Shown one piece after another: positions 298-64,000 of a DNA stretch of 64,000 nucleotides. The DNA is taken from contig OZ320323.1 in the NCBI GenBank assembly GCA_976226885.1, forward strand, positions 1,488,001 through 1,552,000, given 5' to 3'. Below the pieces are notes generated by a model that was given only the letters and a program-made list of their open reading frames with translations, was not told where the DNA came from and searched no databases. The translations under genes were made by a program, and so were the position numbers. Within the stretch, counting starts at the first letter, position 1, and every line of letters begins with the position of its first letter. Source of the stretch: Iphione sp. A-MEVVRFRX5 (lineage: Eukaryota).

Positions 298-30940
<30,643 letters not shown>

Positions 30941-47300: not shown

Positions 47301-47811
47301 ATTTGCAACTTGTATGTTAATAATTTAAATATAGTCAAGTGTCTTATCTGTCTCCCTGCTGCTGCAGCCCCGTTGGGTCCTATAATCCTGTGTCTTGTTG
47401 TCCGGTTGTTCAGCTGGTTAACTGGCAGGGTTCTTGACAGCAATGGGCTGGTAGGTTGTTCCAATGGGACACCCCCTTATAGTTTAGGGATCAGCGGTAC
47501 GGCAAACTCCTTGGTTTACTTATTTTCCCTCTGAGTGTTCCCCCTTTCTGTGTCTTGGTCTTTTTGTGTGAAGGAATGAGCCCTAATGACACGAGTCTGT
47601 GAATGCCAATGATACTTGTGCTACTAGGTCATCAACGCTTGGCATATTGAATCTCCTTTGGAGGGTGTTGGCGCTTAGGTAGTCTTTACCTTGTAAACAC
47701 AATCTAGCACACTTATTGAGCTGGTTTGTTTCACAAATTGGTTTTTACTCTGAACTAGATTTTAAGTGTTTCAACAAAGTCACGTAAGAGCATGATCTAA
47801 TACAAACTTAC

Positions 47812-48905
47812 TGTTTCATCACTATTTCCTTGTACTCCTCCTCCTCAACAGCATATCAGAGCCAGGAACCAATGACTCCTGAATAAGAAACAAGTCAGAT
47901 GATCATTGAGCTTGTACCCAATTGACCTTTTATACTATCTAAAGTTATGTCAGTTATGTTAGCATTTTATATATCATCTCTTTGAAACTATTCACAAGTA
48001 TGACATAAAGAATCACCAATTACTCTTTTCCACCTTATCTGAGCGGAACTGACATCCTTATCGTTCATTGATTGGTATGATTGTTTGCTTTGAGAGAGCC
48101 AGGGTCCTTACAAGTCCTGGCACACCTCTTCCGGATATTCAAGGCTTTACACAACCTCTGGTAGACTAGTCTGTCCTCCTTGTTCGACTTTGTTGCCAGT
48201 CCTTTCAGTTCAAATTGTTAACTGGGTTCAATCAGCCATCAGTGAGGTGATAATGTTTTCAGGACTAAAATCAAGGCTTGGTTGGGTTTCTTGCTGATGC
48301 ATTTCCAAATTTAAATATCAGTGCTTTGAGCTACTCATGCTTATTGTGACCCACTCATCTGGAAACCAGTTGGCTAGGATTCTGGAAGAGGAAAAATGGA
48401 GTTAGGATATGGGACGGCCAAGACACAATTAAAACCCACTTGGCAGAAAAATGCTTTAAACCACTTATCCTCTCATGTATATCAATAATTGTCTATTTCC
48501 ACCCAAGTATTCCATCCTACTACTCTCAGGCACACCTTACACTGTACATTATACAATTCAACTGCATTTACAATGTTTATTAGTTTAAGTCTGAACTGTT
48601 AAAGGGTCACATGATGCATCAAGGCATTGGCAAAGTACTCTGCATTGGTGCATCATGACAAATGAACATGAAGCCTTGAGACCTCATGCTGCCATTAAAG
48701 GTATATATAGGATTATATCAGTGCTGTCTTACAATATGAACAGAATAGGACCTTCCCACTGTGTAGTGGAGAAGGAAGAGCCCACAGTTGTATGAGTTGG
48801 GCTGTTGTTGGCACTTTGGGAGACTGCCCTTGAAGGTATCAGAGTTGAACACCCTAGAACCACACTTTTCTTTCTGTTTGATCGTCCACTCTACCTGGAA
48901 ATACC
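47812..48905 (-). pseudogene. Older, diverged and rearranged fragments of the same SENP6/7-like exons
   Basis: EEEYKEIVMKQ|gtaagt (47812); degenerate NP..NWFP..NKH.LKALI (48290-48390); VEWTIK..PKCQQQPNSYNCGLFLLHY (48735-48905). Confidence 0.7.
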
Positions 48906-51398
48906 TGTTAGAGATGAAAGGACTTCCTCTTTGGTGGCACCCTCTTGCCTTTCTTGGGTGGTGAGCAAGCCATGGAGGTCCTAAGATGGGGCCCCCTCTC
49001 GTGTTCCACAGTGGAGCTGTCCTGAGGGTCATCCCCCCTCTTGCCTGTTTTGGTGCTGGTCTCTCCTCTGCCCCTCCACTGCCCTCGAACTCAAGCTGCT
49101 GATGCAGACCCTGCAGGGGCCACTCCCTTTTGCTCCTCTTCCTTGCAGCTTGTTGAGGCTATCTTAACATCCCCTTCCTCTTCTTGTTCCCTCAGGGAGG
49201 GTCCTTGGGCCACACGCGGAGGATCTTTGACCCGCTGTCCTTATAGAACTCGTAGTAGGACTGTCTAACCTTCTTGAGGAGCTTCTTCAAGGCCCCCTCT
49301 GCCAGATGCAGCTTGGTATCCAGGTGCCTCTGAACATCTCAAGTCTTGGTTTGGTTTGTTATTTGATGCCAATTCCAGAATGCCTTCAGCTGCTGATGCT
49401 TGTTTTGGACCGGCTTTTCTGGAAACCAGTTCTCTAGGGCATTCATCAGAATCCTGTAGTCCTGGATTGGATTCTGAAATGGGGAAAATGGAGTTATGAT
49501 ATGGGATGGCCAATACACTATTGAAACCCACTTAGCTGAAAATGTCATTTTAACGTCAAAATAACATTATTTTTAGGTTCCTAAGTTCAGCAAAATGCTT
49601 TTTGCCAAGTGGGAACCTACTTGTCCACTCTTGTATATCAATAATTGTCTTTTTCACCCCAAGTATTGCATCCTACCACTGTCATCAGGCAGACCTTACC
49701 CTGTACATTATATAATTCAACTGCATTTACAATGTTTAAAGGGTCACATGATGCACCAAGGCATTGGCAAAGTACTTTGCATTGGTGCATCAGGATGACA
49801 AATGAACATGAAGCCTTGAGACCTCATGCTGCCTTTAAAGGTATATATAGGATTATATCAATGCTATCTTACAATATGAACAGAATAGGACCTTGTCTCT
49901 GCGTACTGGAGAAGGAAGATCCCACAGTCGTATGAGTTGGACTGTTGTTGGCACTTTGGGAGACTGCCCTTGAAGGTATCAGAGTTGAACACCCTAGCAC
50001 CACACTTTTCTTTCCATTTGATCGCCCACTCTACCTGCAAATACCTGTTAGAGATGAAGAGACTTGTAAAATCAATTCATTTCCCATGAGGTTGCTAGTA
50101 CTAGTTATCATACTACTTACGTGACTAACACCATGAAAGAAACCATCAAATACTTGACTTACTTCCACAGTATTTGAAAAACCATTCCTCTTCTCTTCTC
50201 ATCTCTGTGTGAGTCGAATATGAGGATGTATGGTCTGAAAGGTAAAGTTGGTTTGTTTCACAAACTGGTTTTGACTCTTAATTACATTTGAAGTGTTTCA
50301 ACAAAGTCACATGACAGTATGGTCTAATACAAACTTGCTGTTTTATGCCTCTTTTCTTGGACTCCTTTTCAGTAGGGTCTTGGATGAGCACTGGCTGCCC
50401 CTCCCCTGTTTGGCCTTCAAGTGTCTGGTTTCAGGTGTCCCTGAAAATGGGCTAGCCAGCAGTCCAATAAATATAACTCGTGATGATCCAGAAATGGTGC
50501 TGGCCAATTGACATCTTCCTTACTGTCCTGGTGCGAGCTGCACCATTCCCGATATATCTGCATGGCCCATTTACTGGCATGTTGTTTGTTTGGAGGAATT
50601 TGTTTCTGTATTTGCTCTTTGAGCTGCTGGCATGACAGGTTCATGTAGCTCCATTGTTCCCCCCACCTCAACGTAATGTCCCCACCCTTGAGGGTGTGGA
50701 TGCTTTGCTGCCTCCCTCCCCAGGGGGGGTGCCTGACAACATAAAGGCCATCTCATCCCCAAACAAGTTGACTAGTACATACTGGACCTCCACTTCTTGG
50801 GAGAGTACCGAGGGCACTCCTCCACTCCTTTGCAAGATTGTCTTCATCACTCAAGGCATCAAGGGTTGGTGACAGGCTTGGTGTTGATAGCTGGGAAGCC
50901 TGCTTAGTCAGCTGCATGGTTGAAGCCATGTAAGTTGATGTTTGCTGGAGAGATCTCTCTCCTTCTTCCCCTTAGGGGTCTGCTTCCTCTTTGGTGGCAC
51001 CCTCTTGCCTTTCTTGGGTGGTGAGCAAGCCATGGAGGTGCTAAGACGGGGCCCCCTCTCGTGTTCCACAGTGGAGCTGTCCTGAGGGTCATCCCCCCTC
51101 TTGCCTGTTTTGGTGCTGGTCTCTCCTCTGCCCCTCCACTGCCCTCGAACTCGAGCTGCTGATGCAGACCCTGCAGGGGCCATTCCCTTTTGCTCCTCTC
51201 CCTTGCAGCTTGTTGAGGCTATCTTAACATCCCCTTCCTCTTCTTGTTCCCTCAGGGAGGGTCCTTGGGCCACACGCGGAGGATCTTTGACCCGCTGTCC
51301 TTATAGAACTCGTAGTAGGACTGTCTAACCTTCTTGAGGAGCTTCTTCAAGCCCCCCTCTGCCAGATGCAGCTTGGTATCCAGGTGCCTCTGAACATC

Positions 51399-52470
51399 TC
51401 AAGTCTTGGTTTGGTTTGTTATTGATGCCAATTCCAGTATGAATGCCTTCAGCTGCTGATGCTTGTTTTGGACCGGATTTTCTGGAAACCAGTTCTCTAG
51501 GGCATTCATCAGAATCCTGTAGTCCTGGATTGGATTCTGAAATGGGGAAAATGGAGTTATGATATGGGATGGCCAATACACTATTGAAACCCACTTAGCT
51601 GAAAATGTCATTTTAACGTCAAAATAACATTATTTTTAGGTTCCTAAGTTCAGCAAAATGCTTTTTGCCAAGTGGGAACCTACTTGTCCACTCTTGTATA
51701 TCAATAATTGTCTTTTTCACCCCAAGTATTGCATCCTACCACTGTCATCAGGCAGACCTTACCCTGTACATTATATAATTCAACTGCATTTACAATGTTT
51801 AAAGGGTCACATGATGCACCAAGGCATTGGCAAAGTACTTTGCATTGGTGCATCAGGATGACAAATGAACATGAAGGCTTGAGACCTCATGCTGCCTTTA
51901 AAGGTATATATAGGATTATATCAATGCTATCTTACAATATGAACAGAATAGGACCTTGTCTCTGCGTACTGGAGAAGGAAGATCCCACAGTCGTATGAGT
52001 TGGACTGTTGTTGGCACTTTGGGAGACTGCCCTTGAAGGTATCAGAGTTGAACACCCTAGCACCACACTTTTCTTTCCATTTGATTGCCCACTCTACCTG
52101 CAAATACCTGTTAGAGATGAAGAGACTTGTAAAATCAATTCATTTCCCATGAGGTTGCTAGTACTAGTTATCATACTACTTACGTGACTAACACCATGAA
52201 AGAAACCATCAAATACTTGACTTACTTCCACAGTATTTGAAAAACCATTCCTCTTCTCTTCTCATCTCTGTGTGAGTCGAATATGAGGATGTATGGTCTG
52301 AAAGGTAAAGTTGGTTTGTTTCACAAACTGGTTTTGACTCTTAATTACATTTGAAGTGTTTCAACAAAGTCACATGACAGTATGGTCTAATACAAACTTG
52401 CTGTTTTATGCCTCTTTTCTTGGACTCCTTCTCAGTAGGGTCTTGGATGAGCACTGGCTGCCCCTCCCCT
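51399..52470 (-). pseudogene. SENP6/7-like SUMO protease (peptidase C48) 3' exons, representative array unit
   Basis: End of exon Z (..RGIKQ, 52402), exon A 52226-52297 (PYILIFDS..QILW), exon B 51936-52107 (YLQVEW..PKCQQQSNSYDCGIFLLQYAE), exon C 51399-51536 (NPIQ..NWFP..K...L..FILEL*). Phases join; the catalytic-His exon is absent. Confidence 0.8.
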
Positions 52471-52479
52471 GTTTGGCCT

Positions 52480-52734
52480 TCAAGTGTCTGGTTTCAGGTG
52501 TCCCTGAAAATGGGCTAGCCAGCAGTCCAATAAATATAAGTCGTGATGATCCAGAAATGGTGCTGGCCAATTGACATCTTCCTTACTGTCCTGGTGTGAG
52601 CTGCACCATTCCCGATATATCTGCATGGCCCATTTACTGGCATGTTGTTTGTTTGGAGGAATTTGTTTCTGTATTTGCTCTTTGAGCTGCTGGCATGACA
52701 GGTTCATGTAGCTCCATTGTTCCCCCCACCTCAA
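52480..52734 (-). pseudogene. Crypton/ZMYM(DUF3504-associated)-like N-terminal fragment, one per array unit
   Basis: QQLKEQIQKQIPPNKQHASKWAMQIYREW...LYLLDCWLAHF resembles the IPxNTxxxTxWAxxxFxxW...LxxWLxxF pattern; recognised by eye only. Confidence 0.55.
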
Positions 52735-55570
52735 CGTACTGGATCTCCTTTGCCCGAGGTGGCTCTGGCTTTGATGCAGGCTGAGGTGGGCTGTTCTCCT
52801 CCTTGCTGGAGGCTGGCAGGGCCTCCGCTATTGTCTCCTGCTCTGTCCCCACCCTTGAGGGTGTGGATGTTTTGCTGCCTCCCTCCCCAGGGGGGGTGCC
52901 TGACAACATAAAGGCCATCTCATCCCCAAACAAGTTGACTAGTACAGACTGGACCTCCACTTCTTGGGAGAGTACCGAGGGCACTCCTCCACTCCTTTGC
53001 AAGATTGTCTTCATCACTCAAGGCATCAAGGGTTGGTGACAGGCTTGGTGTTGATAGCTGGGAAGCCGGCTTAGTCAGCTGCATGGTTGAAGCCATGCAA
53101 GTTGATGTTTGCTGGAGAGATCTCTCTCCTTCTTCCCCTTAGGGGTCTGCTTCCTCTTTGGTGGCACCCTCTTGCCTTTCTTGGGTGGTGAGCAAGCCAT
53201 GGAGGTGCTAAGACGGGGCCCCCTCTCGTGTTCCACAGTGGAGCTGTCCTGAGGGTCATCCCCCCTCTTGCCTGTTTTGGTGCTGGTCTCTCCTCTGCCC
53301 CTCCACTGCCCTCGAACTCGAGCTGCTGATGCAGACCCTGCAGGGGCCACTCCCTTTTGCTCCTCTTCCTTGCAGCTTGTTGAGGCTATCTTAACATCCC
53401 CTTCCTCTTCTTGTTCCCTCAGGGAGGGTCCTTGGGCCACACGCGGAGGATCTTTGACCCGCTGTCCTTATAGAACTCGTAGTAGGACTGTCTAACCTTC
53501 TTGAGGAGCTTCTTCAAGCCCCCCTCTGCCAGATGCAGCTTGGTATCCAGGTGCCTCTGAACATCTCAAGTCTTGGTTTGGTTTGTTATTGATGCCAATT
53601 CCAGTATGAATGCCTTCAGCTGCTGATGCTTGTTTTGGACCGGCTTTTCTGGAAACCAGTTCTCTAGGGCATTCATCAGAATCCTGTAGTCTTGGATTGG
53701 ATTCTGAAATGGGGAAAATGGATGGCCAATACACTATTGAAACCCACTTAGCTGAAAATGTCATTTTAACGTCAAAATAACATTATTTTTAGGTTCCTAA
53801 GTTCAGCAAAATGCTTTTTGCCAAGTGGGAACCTACTTGTCCACTCTTGTATATCAATAATTGTCTTTTTCACCCCAAGTATTGCATCCTACCACTGTCA
53901 TCAGGCAGACCTTACCCTGTACATTATATAATTCAACTGCATTACAATGTTTAAAGGGTCACATGATGCACCAAGGCATTGGCAAAGTACTCTGCTTTGG
54001 TGTATCATGATGACAAATGAACATGAAGCCTTGAGACCTCATGCTGCCCTTAAAGGTATATATAGGATTATATCAATGCTATCTTACAATATGAACAGAA
54101 TAGGACCTTGCCTCTGCGTACTGGAGAAGGAAGATCCCACAGTCGTATGAGTTGGACTGTTGTTGGCACTTTGGGAGACTGCCCTTGAAGGTATCGCCCA
54201 CTCTACCTGCAAATACCTTTTAGAGATGAAAAGACTTGTAAAATCAATTCATTTCCCATGAGCTTGCTAGTACTAGTTATCATACTACTTATGTGACTAA
54301 CACCATGAAAGAAACCATCAAATACTTGACTTACTTCCACAGTATTTGAAAAACCATTCCTCTTCTCTTCTCATCTCTGTGTGAGTCGAATATGAGGATG
54401 TATGGTCTGAAAGGTAAAGTTGGTTTGTTTCACAAACTGGTTTTGACTCTTAATTACATTTGAAGTGTTTCAACAAAGTCACATGACAGTATGGTCTAAT
54501 ACAAACTTGCTGTTTTATGCCTCTTTTCTTGGACTCCTTCTCAGTAGGGTCTTGGATGAGCACTGGCTGCCCCTCCCCTGTTTGGCCTTCAAGTGTCTGG
54601 TTTCAGGTGTCCCTGAAAATGGGCTAGCCAGCAGTCCAATAAATATAAGTCGTGATGATCCAGAAATGGTGCTGGCCAATTGACATCTTCCTTACTGTCC
54701 TGGTGCGAGCTGCACCATTCCCGATATATCTGCATGGCCCATTTACTGGCATGTTGTTTGTTTGGAGGAATTTGTTTCTGTATTTGCTCTTTGAGCTGCT
54801 GGCATAACAGGTTCATGTAGCTCCATTGTTCCCCCCACCTCAACGTACTGTCCCCACCCTTGAGGGTGTGGATGCTTTGCTGCCTCCCTCCCCAGGGGGG
54901 GTGCCTGACAACATAAAGGCCATCTCATCCCCAAACAAGTTGACTAGTACAGACTGGACCTCCACTTCTTGGGAGAGTACCGAGGGCACTCCTCCACTCC
55001 TTTGCAAGATTGTCTTCATCACTCAAGGCATCAAGGGTTGGTGACAGGCTTGGTGTTGATAGCTGGGAAGCCTGCTTAGTCAGCTGCATGGTTGAAGCCA
55101 TGTAAGTTGATGTTTGCTGGAGAGATCTCTCTCCTTCTTCCCCTTAGGGGTCTGCTTCCTCTTTGGTGGCACCCTCTTGCCTTTCTTGGGTGGTGAGCAA
55201 GCCATGGAGGTGCTAAGACGGGGCCCCCTCTCGTGTTCCACAGTGGAGCTGTCCTGAGGGTCATCCCCCCTCTTGCCTGTTTTGGTGCTGGTCTCTCCTC
55301 TGCCCCTCCACTGCCCTCGAACTCGAGCTGCTGATGCAGACCCTGCAGGGGCCATTCCCTTTTGCTCCTCTTCCTTGCAGCTTGTTGAGGCTATCTTAAC
55401 ATCCCCTTCCTCTTCTTGTTCCCTCAGGGAGGGTCCTTGGGCCACACGCGGAGGATCTTTGACCCGCTGTCCTAATAGAACTCGTAGTAGGACTGTCTAA
55501 CCTTCTTGAGGAGCTTCTTCAAGCCCCCCTCTGCCAGATGCAGCTTGGTATCCAGGTGCCTCTGAACATC

Positions 55571-56824
55571 TCAAGTCTTGGTTTGGTTTGTTATTGATGC
55601 CAATTCCAGTATGAATGCCTTCAGCTGCTGATGCTTGTTTTGGACCGGCTTTTCTGGAAACCAGTTCTCTAGGGCATTCATCAGAATCCTGTAGTCCTGG
55701 ATTGGATTCTGAAATGGAGAATATGGAGTTATGATATGGGATGGCCAATACACTATTGAAACCCACTTAGCTGAAAATGTCATTTTAACGTCAAAATAAC
55801 ATTATTTTTAGGTTCCTAAGTTCAGCAAAATGCTTTTTGCCAAGTGGGAACCTACTTGTCCACTCTTGTATATCAATAATTGTCTTTTTCACCCCAAGTA
55901 TTGCATCCTACCACTGTCATCAGGCAGACCTTACCCTGTACATTATATAATTCAACTGCATTTACAATGTTTAAAGGGTCACATGATGCACCAAGGCATT
56001 GGCAAAGTACTTTGCATTGGTGCATCAGGATGACAAATGAACATGAAGCCTTGAGACCTCATGCTGCCTTTAAAGGTATATATAGGATTATATCAATGCT
56101 ATCTTACAATATGAACAGAATAGGACCTTGTCTCTGCGTACTGGAGAAGGAAGATCCCACAGTCGTATGAGTTGGACTGTTGTTGGCACTTTGGGAGACT
56201 GCCTTTGAAGGTATCAGAGTTGAACACCCTAGCACCACACTTTTCTTTCCATTTGATTGCCCACTCTACCTGCAAATACCTGTTAGAGATGAAGAGACTT
56301 GTAAAATCAATTCATTTCCCATGAGGTTGCTAGTACTAGTTATCATACTACTTACGTGACTAACACCATGAAAGAAACCATCAAATACTTGACTTACTTC
56401 CACAGTATTTGAAAAACCATTCCTCTTCTCTTCTCATCTCTGTGTGAGTCGAATATGAGGATGTATGGTCTGAAAGGTAAAGTTGGTTTGTTTCACAAAC
56501 TGGTTTTGACTCTTAATTACATTTGAAGTGTTTCAACAAAGTCACATGACAGTATGGTCTAATACAAACTTGCTGTTTTATGCCTCTTTTCTTGGACTCC
56601 TTTTCAGTAGGGTCTTGGATGAGCACTGGCTGCCCCTCCCCTGTTTGGCCTTCAAGTGTCTGATGATCCAGAAATGGTGCTGGCCAATTGACATCTTCCT
56701 TACTGTCCTGGTGCGAGCTGCACCATTCCTGATATATCTGCATGGCCCATTTACTGGCATGTTGTTTGTTTGGAGGAATTTGTTTCTGTATTCGCTCTTT
56801 GAGCTGCTGGCATGACAGGTTCAT
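55571..56824 (-). CDS. Predicted open spliced chimera (Crypton-like N-terminus + SENP6/7 C-terminal half), ~210 aa
   Basis: Exons 56574-56824, 56398-56469, 56108-56279 and 55571-55708 join without a stop (GC donor on the first intron); expression unknown. Confidence 0.3.
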
Positions 56825-59688
56825 GTAGCTCCATTGTTCCCCCCACCTCAACGTACTGGATCTCCTTTGCCCGAGGTGGCTCTGGCTTTGATGCAGGCTG
56901 AGGTGGGCTGTTCTCCTCCTTGCTGGAGGCTGGCAGGGCCTCCGCTATTGTCTCCTGCTCTGTCCCCACCCTTGAGGGTGTGGATGTTTTGCTGCCTCCC
57001 TCCCCAGGGGGGGTGCCTGACAACATAAAGGCCATCTCATCCCCAAACAAGTTGACTAGTACAGACTGGACCTCCACTTCTTGGGAGAGTATCGAGGGCA
57101 CTCCTCCACTCCTTTGCAAGATTGTCTTCATCACTCAAGGCATCAAGGGTTGGTGACAGGCTTGGTGTTGATAGCTGGGAAGCCGGCTTAGTCAGCTGCA
57201 TGGTTGAAGCCATGCAAGTTGATGTTTGCTGGAGAGATCTCTCTCCTTCTTCCCCTTAGGGGTCTGCTTCCTCTTTGGTGGCACCCTCTTGCCTTTCTTG
57301 GGTGGTGAGCAAGCCATGGAGGTGCTAAGACGGGGCCCCCTCTCGTGTTCCACAGTGGAGCTGTCCTGAGGGTCATCCCCCCTCTTGCCTGTTTTGGTGC
57401 TGGTCTCTCCTCTGCCCCTCCACTGCCCTCGAACTCGAGCTGCTGATGCAGACCGTGCAGGGGCCACTCCCTTTTGCTCCTCTTCCTTGCAGCTTGTTGA
57501 GGCTATCTTAACATCCCCTTCCTCTTCTTGTTCCCTCAGGGAGGGTCCTTGGGCCACACGCGGAGGATCTTTGACCCGCTGTCCTTATAGAACTCGTAGT
57601 AGGACTGTCTAACCTTCTTAAGGAGCTTCTTCAAGCCCCCCTCTGCCAGATGCAGCTTGGTATCCAGGTGCCTCTGAACATCTCAAGTCTTGGTTTGGTT
57701 TGTTATTGATGCCAATTCCAGTATGAATGCCTTCAGCTGCTGATGCTTGTTTTGGACCGGCTTTTCTGGAAACCAGTTCTCTAGGGCATTCATCAGAATC
57801 CTGTAGTCCTGGATTGGATTCTGAAATGGGGAAAATGGATGGCCAATACACTATTGAAACCCACTTAGCTGAAAATGTCATTTTAACGTCAAAATAACAT
57901 TATTTTTAGGTTCCTAAGTTCAGCAAAATGCTTTTTGCCAAGTGGGAACCTACTTGTCCACTCTTGTATATCAATAATTGTCTTTTTCACCCCAAGTATT
58001 GCATCCTACCACTGTCAGCAGGCAGACCTTACCCTGTACATTATATAATTCAACTGCATTTACAATGTTTAAAGGGTCACATGATGCACCAAGGCATTGG
58101 CAAAGTACTCTGCTTTGGTGTATCATGATGACAAATGAACATGAAGCCTTGAGACCTCATGCTGCCCTTAAAGGTATATATAGGATTATATCAATGCTAT
58201 CTTACAATATGAACAGAATAGGACCTTGCCTCTGTGTACTGGAGAAGGAAGATCCCACAGTCGTATGAGTTGGACTGTTGTTGGCACTTTGGGAGACCTC
58301 CCTTGAAGGTATCGCCCACTCTACCTGCAAATACCTGTTAGAGATGAAAAGACTTGTAAAATCAATTCATTTCCCATGAGCTTGCTAGTACTAGTTATCA
58401 TACTACTTACGTGACTAACACCATGAAAGAAACCATCAAATACTTGACTTACTTCCACAGTATTTGAAAAACCATTCCTCTTCTCTTCTCATCTCTGTGT
58501 GAGTCGAATATGAGGATGTATGGTCTGAAAGGTAAAGTTGGTTTGTTTCACAAACTGGTTTTGACTCTTAATTACATTTGAAGTGTTTCAACAAAGTCAC
58601 ATGACAGTATGGTCTAATACAAACTTGCTGTTTTATGCCTCTTTTCTTGGACTCCTTCTCAGTAGGGTCTTGGATGAGCACTGGCTGCCCCTCCCCTGTT
58701 TGGCCTTCAAGTGTCTGGTTTCAGGTGTCCCTGAAAATGGGCTAGCCAGCAGTCCAATAAATATAAGTCGTGATGATCCAGAAATGGTGCTGGCCAATTG
58801 ACATCTTCCTTACTGTCCTGGTGCGAGCTGCACCATTCCCGATATATCTGCATGGCCCATTTACTGGCATGTTGTTTGTTTGGAGGAATTTGTTTCTGTA
58901 TTTGCTCTTTGAGCTGCTGGCATGACAGGTTCATGTAGCTCCATTGTTCCCCCCACCTCAACGTACTGTCCCCACCCTTGAGGGTGTGGATGCTTTGCTG
59001 CCTCCCTCCCCAGGGGGGGTGCCTGACAACATAAAGGCCATCTCATCCCCAAACAAGTTGACTAGTACAGACTGGACCTCCACTTCTTGGGAGAGTACCG
59101 AGGGCACTCCTCCACTCCTTTGCAAGATTGTCTTCATCACTCAAGGCATCAAGGGTTGGTGACAGGCTTGGTGTTGATAGCTGGGAAGCCTGCTTAGTCA
59201 GCTGCATGGTTGAAGCCATGCAAGTTGATGTTTGCTGGAGAGATCTCTCTCCTTCTTCCCCTTAGGGGTCTGCTTCCTCTTTGGTGGCACCCTCTTGCCT
59301 TTCTTGGGTTGTGAGCAAGCCATGGAGGTGCTAAGACGGGGCCCCCTCTCGTGTTCCACAGTGGAGCTGTCCTGAGGGTCATCCCCCCTCTTGCCTGTTT
59401 TGGTGCTGGTCTCTCCTCTGCCCCTCCACTGCCCTCGAACTCGAGCTGCTGATGCAGACCCTGCAGGGGCCACTCCCTTTTGCTCCTCTTCCTTGCAGCT
59501 TGTTGAGGCTATCTTAACATCCCCTTCCTCTTCTTGTTCCCTCAGGGAGGGTCCTTGGGCCACATGCGGAGGATCTTTGACCCGCTGTCCTTATAGAACT
59601 CGTAGTAGGACTGTCTAACCTTCTTGAGGAGCTTCTTCAAGCCCCCCTCTGCCAGATGCAGCTTGGTATCCAGGTGCCTCTGAACATC

Positions 59689-60942
59689 TCAAGTCTTGGT
59701 TTGCTTTGTTATTGATGCCAATTCCAGTATGAATGCCTTCAGCTGCTGATGCTTGTTTTGGACCGGCTTTTCTGGAAACCAGTTCTCTAGGGCATTCATC
59801 AGAATCCTGTAGTCCTGGATTGGATTCTGAAATGGGGAAAATGGAGTTATGATATGGGATGGCCAATACACTATTGAAACCCACTTAGCTGAAAATGTCA
59901 TTTTAACGTCAAAATAACATTATTTTTAGGTTCCTAAGTTCAGCAAAATGCTTTTTGCCAAGTGGGAACCTACTTGTCCACTCTTGTATATCAATAATTG
60001 TCTTTTTCACCCCAAGTATTGCATCCTACCACTGTCATCAGGCAGACCTTACCCTGTACATTATATAATTCCACTGCATTTACAATGTTTAAAGGGTCAC
60101 ATGATGCACCAAGGCATTGGCAAAGTACTTTGCATTGGTGCATCAGGATGACAAATGAACATGAAGCCTTGAGACCTCATGCTGCCTTTAAAGGTATATA
60201 TAGGATTATATCAATGCTATCTTACAATATGAACAGAATAGGACCTTGTCTCTGCGTACTGGAGAAGGAAGATCCCACAGTCGTATGAGTTGGACTGTTG
60301 TTGGCACTTTGGGAGACTGCCCTTGAAGGTATCAGAGTTGAACACCCTAGCACCACACTTTTCTTTCCATTTGATTGCCCACTCTACCTGCAAATACCTG
60401 TTAGAGATGAAAAGACTTGTAAAATCAATTCATTTCCCATGAAGTTGCTAGTACTAGTTATCATACTACTTACGTGACTAACACCATGAAAGAAACCATC
60501 AAATACTTGACTTACTTCCACAGTATTTGAAAAACCATTCCTCTTCTCTTCTCATCTCTGTGTGAGTCGAATATGAGGATGTATGGTCTGAAAGGTAAAG
60601 TTGGTTTGTTTCACAAACTGGTTTTGACTCTTAATTACATTTGAAGTGTTTCAACAAAGTCACATGACAGTATGGTCTAATACAAACTTGCTGTTTTATG
60701 CCTCTTTTCTTGGACTCCTTCTCAGTAGGGTCTTGGATGAGCACTGGCTGCCCCTCCCCTGTTTGGCCTTCAAGTGTCTGATGATCCAGAAATGGTGCTG
60801 GCCAATTGACATCTTCCTTACTGTCCTGGTGCGAGCTGCACCATTCCCGATATATCTGCATGGCCCATTTACTGGCATGTTGTTTGTTTGGAGGAATTTG
60901 TTTCTGTATTCGCTCTTTGAGCTGCTGGCATGACAGGTTCAT
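59689..60942 (-). CDS. Second copy of the predicted open spliced chimera
   Basis: Exons 60692-60942, 60516-60587, 60226-60397 and 59689-59826; offset 4118 bp from the first copy. Confidence 0.3.
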
Positions 60943-63900
60943 GTAGCTCCATTGTTCCCCCCACCTCAACGTACTGGATCTCCTTTGCACGAGGTGGCTC
61001 TGGCTTTGATGCAGGCTGAGGTGGGCTGTTCTCCTCCTTGCTGGAGGCTGGCAGGGCCTCCGCTATTGTCTCCTGCTCTGTCCCCACCCTTGAGGGTGTG
61101 GATGTTTTGCTGCCTCCCTCCCCAGGGGGGGTGCCTGACAACATAAAGGCCATCTCATCCCCAAACAAGTTGACTAGTACAGACTGGACCTCCACTTCTT
61201 GGGAGAGTACCGAGGGCACTCCTCCACTCCTTTGCAAGATTGTCTTCATCACTCAAGGCATCAAGGGTTGGTGACAGGCTTGGTGTTGATAGCTGGGAAG
61301 CCGGCTTAGTCAGCTGCATGGTTGAAGCCATGCAAGTTGATGTTTGCTGGAGAGATCTCTCTCCTTCTTCCCCTTAGGGGTCTGCTTCCTCTTTGGTGGC
61401 ACCCTCTTGCCTTTCTTGGGTGGTGAGCAAGCCATGGAGGTGCTAAGACGGGGCCCCCTCTCGTGTTCCACAGTGGAGCTGTCCTGAGGGTCATCCCCCC
61501 TCTTGCCTGTTTTGGTGCTGGTCTCTCCTCTGCCCCTCCACTGCCCTCGAACTCGAGCTGCTGATGCAGACCCTGCAGGGGCCACTCCCTTTTGCTCCTC
61601 TTCCTTGCAGCTTGTTGAGGCTATCTTAACATCCCCTTCCTCTTCTTGTTCCCTCAGGGAGGGTCCTTGGGCCACACGCGGAGGATCTTTGACCCGCTGT
61701 CCTTATAGAACTCGTAGTAGGACTGTCTAACCTTCTTAAGGAGCTTCTTCAAGCCCCCCTCTGCCAGATGCAGCTTGGTATCCAGGTGCCTCTGAACATC
61801 TCAAGTCTTGGTTTGGTTTGTTATTGATGCCAATTCCAGTATGAATGCCTTCAGCTGCTGTTGCTTGTTTTGGACCGGCTTTTCTGGAAACCAGTTCTCT
61901 AGGGCATTCATCAGAATCCTGTAGTCCTGGATTGGATTCTGAAATGGGGAAAATGGATGGCCAATACACTATTGAAACCCACTTAGCTGAAAATGTCATT
62001 TTAACGTCAAAATAACATTATTTTTAGGTTCCTAAGTTCAGCAAAATGCTTTTTGCCAAGTGGGAACCTACTTGTCCACTCTTGTATATCAATAATTGTC
62101 TTTTTCACCCCAAGTATTGCATCCTACCACTGTCAGCAGGTAGACCTTACCCTGTACATTATATAATTCAACTGCATTTACAATGTTTAAAGGGTCACAT
62201 GATGCACCAAGGCATTGGCAAAGTACTCTGCTTTGGTGTATCATGATGACAAATGAACATGAAGCCTTGAGACCTCATGCTGCCCTTAAAGGTATATACA
62301 GGATTATATCAATGCTATCTTACAATATGAACAGAATACGACCTTGCCTCTGCGTACTGGAGAAGGAAGATCCCACAGTCGTATGAGTTGGACTGTTGTT
62401 GGCACTTTGGGAGACTGCCCTTGAAGGTATCGCCCACTCTACCTGCAAATACCTGTTAGAGATGAAAAGACTTGTAAAATCAATTCATTTCCCATGAGGT
62501 TGCTAGTACTAGTTATCATACTACTTACGTGACTAACACCATGAAAGAAACCATCAAACACTTGACTTACTTCCACAGTATTTGAAAAACCATTCCTCTT
62601 CTCTTCTCATCTCTGTGTGAGTCGAATATGAGGATGTATGGTCTGAAAGGTAAAGTTGGTTTGTTTCACAAACTGGTTTTGACTCTTAATTACATTTGAA
62701 GTGTTTCAACAAAGTCACATGACAGTATGGTCTAATACAAACTTGCTGTTTTATGCCTCTTTTCTTGGACTCCTTCTCAGTAGGGTCTTGGATGAGCACT
62801 GGCTGCCCCTCCCCTGTTTGGCCTTCAAGTGTCTGGTTTCAGGTGTCCCTGAAAATGGGCTAGCCAGCAGTCCAATAAATATAAGTCGTGATGATCCAGA
62901 AATGGTGCTGGCCAATTGACATCTTCCTTACTGTCCTGGTGCGAGCTGCACCATTCCCGATATATCTGCATGGCCCATTTACTGGCATGTTGTTTGTTTG
63001 GAGGAATTTGTTTCTGTATTTGCTCTTTGAGCTGCTGGCATAACAGGTTCATGTAGCTCCATTGTTCCCCCCACCTCAACGTACTGTCCCCACCCTTGAG
63101 GGTGTGGATGCTTTGCTGCCTCCCTCCCCAGGGGGGGTGCCTGACAACATAAAGGCCATCTCATCCCCAAACAAGTTGACTAGTACAGACTGGACCTCCA
63201 CTTCTTGGGAGAGTACCGAGGGCACTCCTCCACTCCTTTGCAAGATTGTCTTCATCACTCAAGGCATCAAGGGTTGGTGACAGGCTTGGTGTTGATAGCT
63301 GGGAAGCCTGCTTAGTCAGCTGCATGGTTGAAGCCATGCAAGTTGATGTTTGCTGGAGAGATCTCTCTCCTTCTTCCCCTTAGGGGTCTGCTTCCTCTTT
63401 GGTGGCACCCTCTTGCCTTTCTTGGGTGGTGAGCAAGCCATGGAGGTGCTAAGACGGGGCCCCCTCTCGTGTTCCACAGTGGAGCTGTCCTGAGGGTCAT
63501 CCCCCCTCTTGCCTGTTTTGGTGCTGGTCTCTCCTCTGCCCCTCCACTGCCCTCGAACTCGAGCTGCTGATGCAGACCCTGCAGGGGCCACTCCCTTTTG
63601 CTCCTCTTCCTTGCAGCTTGTTGAGGCTATCTTAACATCCCCTTCCTCTTCTTGTTCCCTCAGGGAGGGTCCTTGGGCCACACGCGGAGGATCTTTGACC
63701 CGCTGTCCTTATAGAACTCGTAGTAGGACTGTCTAACCTTCTTGAGGAGCTTCTTCAAGCCCCCCTCTGCCAGATGCAGCTTGGTATCCAGGTGCCTCTG
63801 AACATCTCAAGTCTTGGTTTGGTTTGTTATTGATGCCAATTCCAGTATGAATGCCTTCAGCTGCTGATGCTTGTTTTGGACCGGATTTTCTGGAAACCAG

Positions 63901-64000
63901 TTCTCTAGGGCATTCATCAGAATCCTGTAGTCCTGGATTGGATTCTGAAATGGGGAAAATGGAGTTATGATATGGGATGGCCAATACACTATTGAAACCC

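Follow-up and report, generated by a model that had tools for sequence, protein, structure and literature searches.

The right end of a 64,000-nucleotide window of the Iphione sp. genome (C26:1,488,001-1,552,000 of the 1.18 Gb assembly GCA_976226885.1, C26 being the contig that carries the window, OZ320323.1) contains a long head-to-tail array. The array is probably a macrosatellite formed from a gene fragment and a transposon fragment. Its chimeric ~2.06-kb segment joins the last exons of a SENP6/7-type SUMO-protease paralog to the 5' end of a Crypton-like element, and would have no protease function. To judge from its sequence, the array is most likely inert DNA that is possibly transcribed passively. 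A prediction made earlier from the letters of the window (the original prediction) had recognized SENP6/7-like exons in a macrosatellite and offered two readings, alternative terminal cassettes or a gene-derived satellite. The second suits the evidence.

Organization of the tandem array

A repeat search of the window found 7-8 in-register copies, arranged head to tail with a spacing of 2,005-2,167 bp, from ~48.6 kb to the window end. The extent of the array was determined with a two-unit reference, which was compared by BLAST with the window and 40 kb to its right. It spans from ~48,290 to extended coordinate 69,090 (C26:1,557,090), that is ~20.8 kb and ~10 units in the assembly, and overruns the right end of the window by 5,090 bp. 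With the same reference no unit-like sequence was found in the next 35 kb rightward nor in the window's first 47.7 kb. The predicted ~2-kb tandem units at 48,290-64,000 are thus real. The homogenised core, as defined by the repeat search, BLAST and unit alignment, lies on the minus strand from 48,923 to 64,000 and continues to C26:1,557,090. Anchored unit starts are at 50,676, 52,843, 54,848, 56,960, 58,966, 61,078 and 63,084, and unit length is 2,005-2,167 bp.

Multiple alignment showed that the nine inner units are mutually 97-99.7% identical. They are of two types, A and B, told apart chiefly by indels, and a two-unit block (B-A, 4,118 bp) recurs as a higher-order repeat at 99.3-99.4% identity. 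Both ends of the array are older partial copies of 84-91% identity. The degenerate edge unit at 48,290-48,925 (minus strand) is 86-87% identical to the core and lacks ~940 bp. It has an exon-2-like exon at 48,763-48,906 (minus strand), with the Cys kept and DCG changed to NCG, and an exon-3-like relic at 48,304-48,453 (minus strand), which has 56% identity and contains stops. This picture is the usual one for an array whose middle would have been homogenised through unequal exchange. A kilobase-scale unit repeated head to tail at high identity is what defines a macrosatellite or long-unit tandem repeat, and the array has this form. An assembly artefact, whether in the number of copies or in the array as such, is extremely improbable; the substitutions and indels form a structured pattern, with units of types A and B, one hybrid and diverged edges, which an assembler is unlikely to invent.

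Tandem Repeats Finder (TRF), with a longest period of 500, made no call for the array because the unit period exceeds this 500-bp maximum. Rfam at gathering thresholds gave no match in the 44-56 kb part of the window. Directly beyond the right end of the array there is a 45-nt inverted piece of the unit's Crypton fragment (L001:5,101-5,145), which may be a trace of a junction-making rearrangement.

SENP6/7-derived exons of the unit

Every coding remnant of the array is on the minus strand, and each unit has four pieces, three exons and the tail of a fourth. In a representative unit, the tail of the His-containing exon (...GQPVLIQDPTEKESKKRGIK-Q, ending ...ESKKRGIK-Q) is at 52,402-52,488, in a phase that suits the next exon. 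The Asp exon (PYILIFDSH...QILW-K) is at 52,226-52,297, with a ttcag acceptor and a gtaagt donor, and the Gln/Cys exon (YLQVEW...CQQQSNSYDCG...) is at 51,936-52,107. The last coding exon (NPIQDY...NWFP...AFILEL...) and its stop codon occupy 51,399-51,536. The reading phase agrees over the first two exon junctions, and the frame into the last exon is maintained by a GTAAGA donor four codons past the expected site. Each of the nine core units has GCAAGT as the donor of the exon tail; the two old edge copies have GTAAGT. The exons had been predicted to be spliceable and to end in AFILEL followed by a stop. The minus-strand exons do have canonical sites, except for a GC donor after GIKQ in internal units, and the last exon is present but continues for nine further codons between AFILEL and the stop.

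The exon peptides were searched and aligned one exon at a time. The Gln/Cys exon alone matches the Pfam family PF02902 (Peptidase_C48) with 22.3 bits (cut-off 20.7, E 1.3e-4), and it is this middle exon alone that carries the C48 profile match; the Asp exon and the last exon, each alone, had no match in Pfam. The top solved-structure match of the Gln/Cys exon is SENP7 (E 7.5e-7). Among 1.84 billion representative proteins there were 247 matches at E <= 0.001, the closest being 50-59% identical. The named full-length proteins looked up among those matches are a SENP6-like protein of Lineus and the SENP7 proteins of skate and cuttlefish. The three exon peptides are collinear with residues 1031-1046, 1052-1101 and 1103-1139 of a 1,145-aa SENP6-like protein, and they also align in order to SENP7 proteins, the region being the last ~115 residues of SENP6/7. 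In addition, the intron before YLQ(V/I)EW has an identical position and phase in the array and in an intact SENP6/7-like gene on contig C11 (see below). The family is therefore the SENP6/7-type C48 family, as originally assigned, on the basis of the PF02902 match of the middle exon, the SENP7 structure and the ordered alignment.

The Asp, Gln and Cys positions are retained in the unit and no His motif is found within it. This bears out the description of a unit with Asp, Gln and Cys but without His; the unit begins ~13 codons past the His position. The units do not hold the complete set of His, Asp, Cys and oxyanion Gln and, without the catalytic His, are therefore unable to encode a C48 protease. 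Comparison with SENP6 and SENP7 (Ulp2-type C48 enzymes) shows that the IFDS motif (Asp), QQxNxxDCG (Gln and Cys) and the NPI...NWFP tail are all present in the unit exons. Unlike these enzymes, the units lack the catalytic His, the N-terminal part of the domain and the substrate-binding region; moreover, the fragment does not share a frame with the sequence preceding it and carries a frameshift in 4 of 10 copies. The array exons are a fragment of a dead paralog and not a member enzyme of the family.

Crypton-like fragment and array-only sequence

The unit is chimeric: the exon tail is preceded by a frame of ~110 codons (...PPNKQHASKWAMQIYREW...LLDCWLAHF) which forms the 5' fragment of a Crypton-like tyrosine recombinase (52,483-52,827, minus strand). 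It runs from an N-terminal QRICH1-type domain to ...LAHF and is best conserved at 52,504-52,713. Genome-wide, the Crypton-like family has at least 412 first-look candidates, of which 150 were scored, all with E <= 1e-7. The 115-aa frame of the unit is 70% identical across 67 aa to a member of this family. A fuller relative at C13:20.46 Mb (3,160-5,133 of C13:20,462,001-20,471,000, minus strand) extends beyond LAHF and has QRICH1-type N-terminal, DUF3504-like and tyrosine-recombinase parts in overlapping frames. Its frames match PF00589 (Phage_integrase) with 28.3 bits (cut-off 27.1), and DUF3504 and QRICH1 weakly. By these matches, the architecture of this relative is that of a Crypton-type tyrosine recombinase.

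In the unit the Crypton homology ends directly after LAHF and a stop follows eight codons on. The SENP exon tail behind the Crypton frame is in a different reading frame. The Crypton fragment of the unit had no Pfam match of its own, and with the N-terminal ~110 codons only, the unit lacks the tyrosine-recombinase catalytic domain. The unit's N-terminal frame resembles those of Crypton elements and their domesticated relatives (QRICH1, ZMYM and DUF3504 proteins), whereas the recombinase domain that Crypton elements have is missing.

A further ~550 bp (52,923-53,467, minus strand) includes a 130-aa basic low-complexity frame and one of 72 aa that opens with MAST... At protein level this segment had no match outside the array, and its frames gave no Pfam match. 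For the 130-aa basic frame a protein atlas returned nothing and the recognition score was low. Both frames are probably not coding. About a third of the unit is the Crypton-like 5' fragment, plus ~350 bp of array-only sequence. The amplified segment had been described as the 3' end of a gene; this holds insofar as the last SENP6/7-like exons are in the units, but the unit as a whole is chimeric, with a Crypton-like 5' fragment and array-only sequence.

Junction with the His exon and flanks of the array

The exon tail of the unit (...GQPVLIQDPTEKESKKRGIKQ) lines up with ...RHPVLMKEPVEK*GSKEIVIKQ of a His exon of the same paralog at C26:2.257 Mb. From this alignment it follows that the unit starts ~13 codons after the catalytic His. 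The possibility that the GIKQ piece is a chance frame was ruled out by the same alignment together with the GTAAGT donors of the edge copies. An inverted leftover of the segment coding for the His, next to the Crypton fragment, was also considered and set aside, the match being ~13 of 22 bases.

Relics of the upstream exons are present to the left of the array, all on the minus strand. The end of the IPINER exon (last ~17 nt) and its intron are at 48,015-48,080 and share 88% identity with their counterpart at C26:2.257 Mb. A His-exon relic, SHWFLALIC, is at 47,848-47,881, with a ttcag acceptor and the His codon at 47,872-47,874, and is followed by a ~35-nt deletion relative to the C26:2.257 Mb copy. 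An old copy of the exon tail and of the intron preceding the Asp exon is at 47,719-47,843 (84% identity). It stops 12 nt short of the Asp-exon acceptor, at the same junction as the C26:2.257 Mb copy. The His-exon relic at 47,848-47,881 is the only one within the window. On the coding strand it is located 3' of the array and is therefore unable to supply the array's exons with the His.

The original prediction had suggested that an intact parent may lie past the right edge of the window and that upstream exons with the HW motif might be found by extending rightward. Neither expectation was borne out. The array ends 5.1 kb on and is followed by 35 kb without a SENP match, and the His-exon relic was located on the left flank instead. 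tblastn with the C11 exon peptides and three SENP6/7 proteins against the 40 kb past the window found nothing outside the array. The 35 kb to the right of the array has only reverse transcriptase (RT)-like and recombinase-like open reading frames (ORFs), mostly on the minus strand.

Coding potential and constraint

The Asp exon is whole in 9 of 10 units; in the rightmost unit the Asp is changed to Ala and the donor to tt. The Gln/Cys exon is open in six. The other four, three of B-type and the hybrid U8, share a 43-nt deletion by which the frame is lost before the Gln/Cys motif (these exons start at 54,216, 58,334, 62,452 and 64,472, minus strand). The last exon is open in all units except the one at 49,473, where it is frameshifted (9/10). 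Variable sites are 19 of 370 (5.1%) in the exons vs ~67 of 1,639 (~4.1%) in the rest of the unit. For the Gln/Cys exon, comparison of the old edge copy with the core gives a non-synonymous divergence (dN) of 0.10 and a synonymous divergence (dS) of 0.03. With its frameshifts, its exon variability and dN above dS, the array does not show an uninterrupted frame under purifying selection. Neither AATAAA nor ATTAAA is present on the coding strand of the whole unit. When the 70-aa exon was compared with public proteins of 38-122 aa, none had three 5-residue words in common with it. The anatomy of the units, their homologies, the breaks in the exons and this absence of constraint are direct observations.

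Two points weigh against an inert array. When only the open copies are considered there are 8 synonymous vs 6 non-synonymous distinct changes, a tiny sample from which the broken copies are excluded, and this leans toward a synonymous excess beyond pure neutrality. The splice sites are also well preserved in most units, though units this young would retain their sites anyway.

The same points enter into a functional alternative, namely that the units serve as alternative 3'-terminal cassettes, or that His-less truncated C48 fragments, perhaps driven by the Crypton 5' end, act as a SUMO-binding decoy. Splice sites as well as phases are intact in most units, all three exons are open in 6 of 10, the synonymous excess among the open copies is slight, and the transposon 5' end that is present in every unit could hold a promoter. 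Such a role is nevertheless highly improbable. The 35 kb on the 5' side has no upstream exons and the His-exon relic is 3' of the array. The Crypton frame terminates at a stop codon and is not in register with that of the exon tail. A frameshift is found in 4 of 10 units, there is no poly(A) hexamer, and the exons vary as much as the non-exon parts. The cassettes first proposed are unlikely for these last three reasons.

Other pieces of the paralog in the genome

Upstream exons of the paralog's catalytic domain, four in number, were located by tblastn with SENP6/7 proteins at C26:2,257,664-2,259,599 on the minus strand. They read ...EGEYLNDVIIDFYLK; ...THIFSS...; ...VDIF...IPVNER; and SHWFLALICYPRLRHPVLMKEPVEK, which is followed by an in-frame TAG. 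This piece, the 5' half of the catalytic domain, ends 12 nt short of the Asp exon, and the blocks on either side of it correspond to the two flanks of the array in a circularly permuted order. The flanks common to the two loci are low-copy, with only ~6 further matches, also in low-copy sequence, on contigs C26 and C4, and their relation looks like a segmental duplication rather than a transposon family.

The three 3' exons also occur as a solo copy at C26:2,140,704-2,141,732, on the plus strand and hence opposite to the array, with 82-89% identity. This copy is damaged in all three, with a frameshift in the Asp exon, a 31-nt deletion in the Gln/Cys exon and a stop in the last exon. The last exon recurs once more, as a partial copy, 500 bp beyond it (5,187-5,377 of C26:2,137,001-2,146,000, plus strand). 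A second small tandem array is present at C4:97.448-97.452 Mb (~4,300-7,700 of C4:97,444,001-97,454,000, minus strand), with units of ~500-1,400 bp. It repeats the middle exons of the paralog, the THIFS-type exon, the His exon and the Asp exon, all of them frameshifted, and its His motif appears as SHW, SPW, SQW and SHQ. Genome-wide searches with the exon peptides, in which all candidates were scored, found no further copy outside these loci and C11, and no intact copy of the array's paralog was found in the assembly. The paralog is dead at every place examined.

Fragments of one gene at several places could also reflect capture and spread by a Helitron/Helentron or Pack-type transposon, the array itself being transposon-borne, in the manner of the Helentron-associated satellites of oyster. 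The pieces of the paralog are indeed at four loci on two contigs, and transposon-borne satellite-like arrays are on record (PMC7492417). This explanation is compatible with a macrosatellite of chimeric units but is itself very unlikely. The dispersed pieces differ in their boundaries and have no common termini, although no search was aimed at Helitron-type ends or hairpins, and the flanks in common with C26:2.257 Mb have few copies and resemble segmental duplication.

The sole complete SENP6/7-like gene located in the assembly is at C11:17.73 Mb. This apparently intact gene (3,527-5,200 of C11:17,731,001-17,741,000, plus strand) has a His exon (...SAHWYLAVICFPG...), an Asp exon (RPCVLIFDSL...TIRE) and a Gln/Cys exon (YLQIEW...PQQTNFSDCG...). 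A long acidic insert, absent from the dead paralog, is present in its His exon. The Gln/Cys exons of C11 and the array have a protein identity of 64-68% with dS saturated. No nucleotide similarity was detected between the C11 gene and the unit, the longest exact match being 13 nt. C11 as the direct parent of the array is ruled out by these values. Past the Gln/Cys exon the C11 frame enters a CT/TC-rich microsatellite, which is intronic. A genome-wide profile search with PF02902 found other C48 genes on C15 and C1 and missed the C11 gene and the array alike.

Origin of the array

We infer the order of events and the mechanism of amplification as follows. The genome's SENP6/7-type SUMO-protease gene would have been duplicated long ago, the duplicate on this chromosome would have decayed, and rearrangements would have dispersed its pieces. 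The 5' end of a Crypton-like element would then have fused into the paralog's His exon, ~13 codons beyond the catalytic His. The resulting ~2.06-kb chimera, in the order exon tail, Asp exon, Gln/Cys exon, last exon, ~350 bp of array-only sequence and Crypton 5' end, would have been amplified head to tail, presumably through unequal crossing-over. Very recently, the two-unit block appears to have been amplified again.

If so, the array illustrates the birth of a long-unit satellite, in which an intron-bearing pseudogene fragment and a transposon 5' end were amplified and a two-unit block was re-amplified. It is also a caution for annotators, in that preserved splice sites and catalytic motifs in young repeats are no proof of function.

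Comparison with petrel and with human macrosatellites

The same SUMO-protease paralog is tandemly arrayed twice in the genome, which is an echo of petrel and pirate in the fly. The Drosophila melanogaster petrel consists of Y-linked local repeats of the SUMO-protease gene CG12717/pirate (Ulp2-like, a verloren paralog) that give rise to PIWI-interacting RNAs (piRNAs) by which pirate is silenced (PMC8168559). The petrel copies are ~92.5% identical to their live target and produce abundant antisense piRNAs (PMC8168559). By analogy, the array might be a small-RNA source locus, a cluster for piRNAs or endogenous small interfering RNAs of the petrel type, in which the paralog repeats would be transcribed and processed to small RNAs.

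Several features are reminiscent of such a locus. The layout is petrel-like (PMC8168559), with locally duplicated non-coding Ulp2/SENP6-7-type paralog copies between transposons and related copies on more than one chromosome; the paralog is tandemly arrayed again on C4; and most of the RT-like ORFs in the 35 kb rightward share the minus orientation of the array. However, a small-RNA source locus is unlikely here. The assembly has no live target, none having been found at the ~90% or higher nucleotide identity seen with petrel, and the intact C11 gene, as described above, is without nucleotide similarity to the unit. In the genome-wide exon searches, the array's exons were intact in no other copy. 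There is no hairpin-capable inversion, the only inverted sequence being the 45-nt scrap at the right edge. The array further differs from petrel in that its unit is a regular 2-kb tandem repeat joined to a Crypton fragment. The parallel with petrel is thus real in layout only, and its live-target feature fails here.

A more specific form of the analogy is that this array and the C4 array are the remains, or a still-active part, of small-RNA silencing aimed at the SUMO-protease paralog, which is quite unlikely. If small RNAs do arise from the arrays, SENP6/7 paralogs would be suggested as recurrent targets of germline conflict. Such a silencing system, if true, would be an independent non-insect parallel to petrel and pirate, caught after the death of the target gene.

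In the human macrosatellite RS447 each unit has a complete intronless ORF. The array is composed only of 3' exons with introns and a transposon fragment, in ~10 copies with an incomplete catalytic set. The array is like RS447 (USP17 deubiquitinase) and D4Z4 in having kilobase units arranged head to tail, and like RS447-type macrosatellites in having units that bear the sequence of a gene for a protease of ubiquitin-like proteins (PMC3018141, PMC5687341).

Other features of the region

Three long plus-strand frames of 289, 664 and 315 aa (L003:2,331-6,006) are located 36-40 kb to the right of the window end. They sit among the otherwise minus-strand RT-like ORFs, and the last of them is recombinase-like by eye. 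The window also has two runs of N, at 23,730-23,971 (242 bases) and 27,892-28,055 (164 bases).

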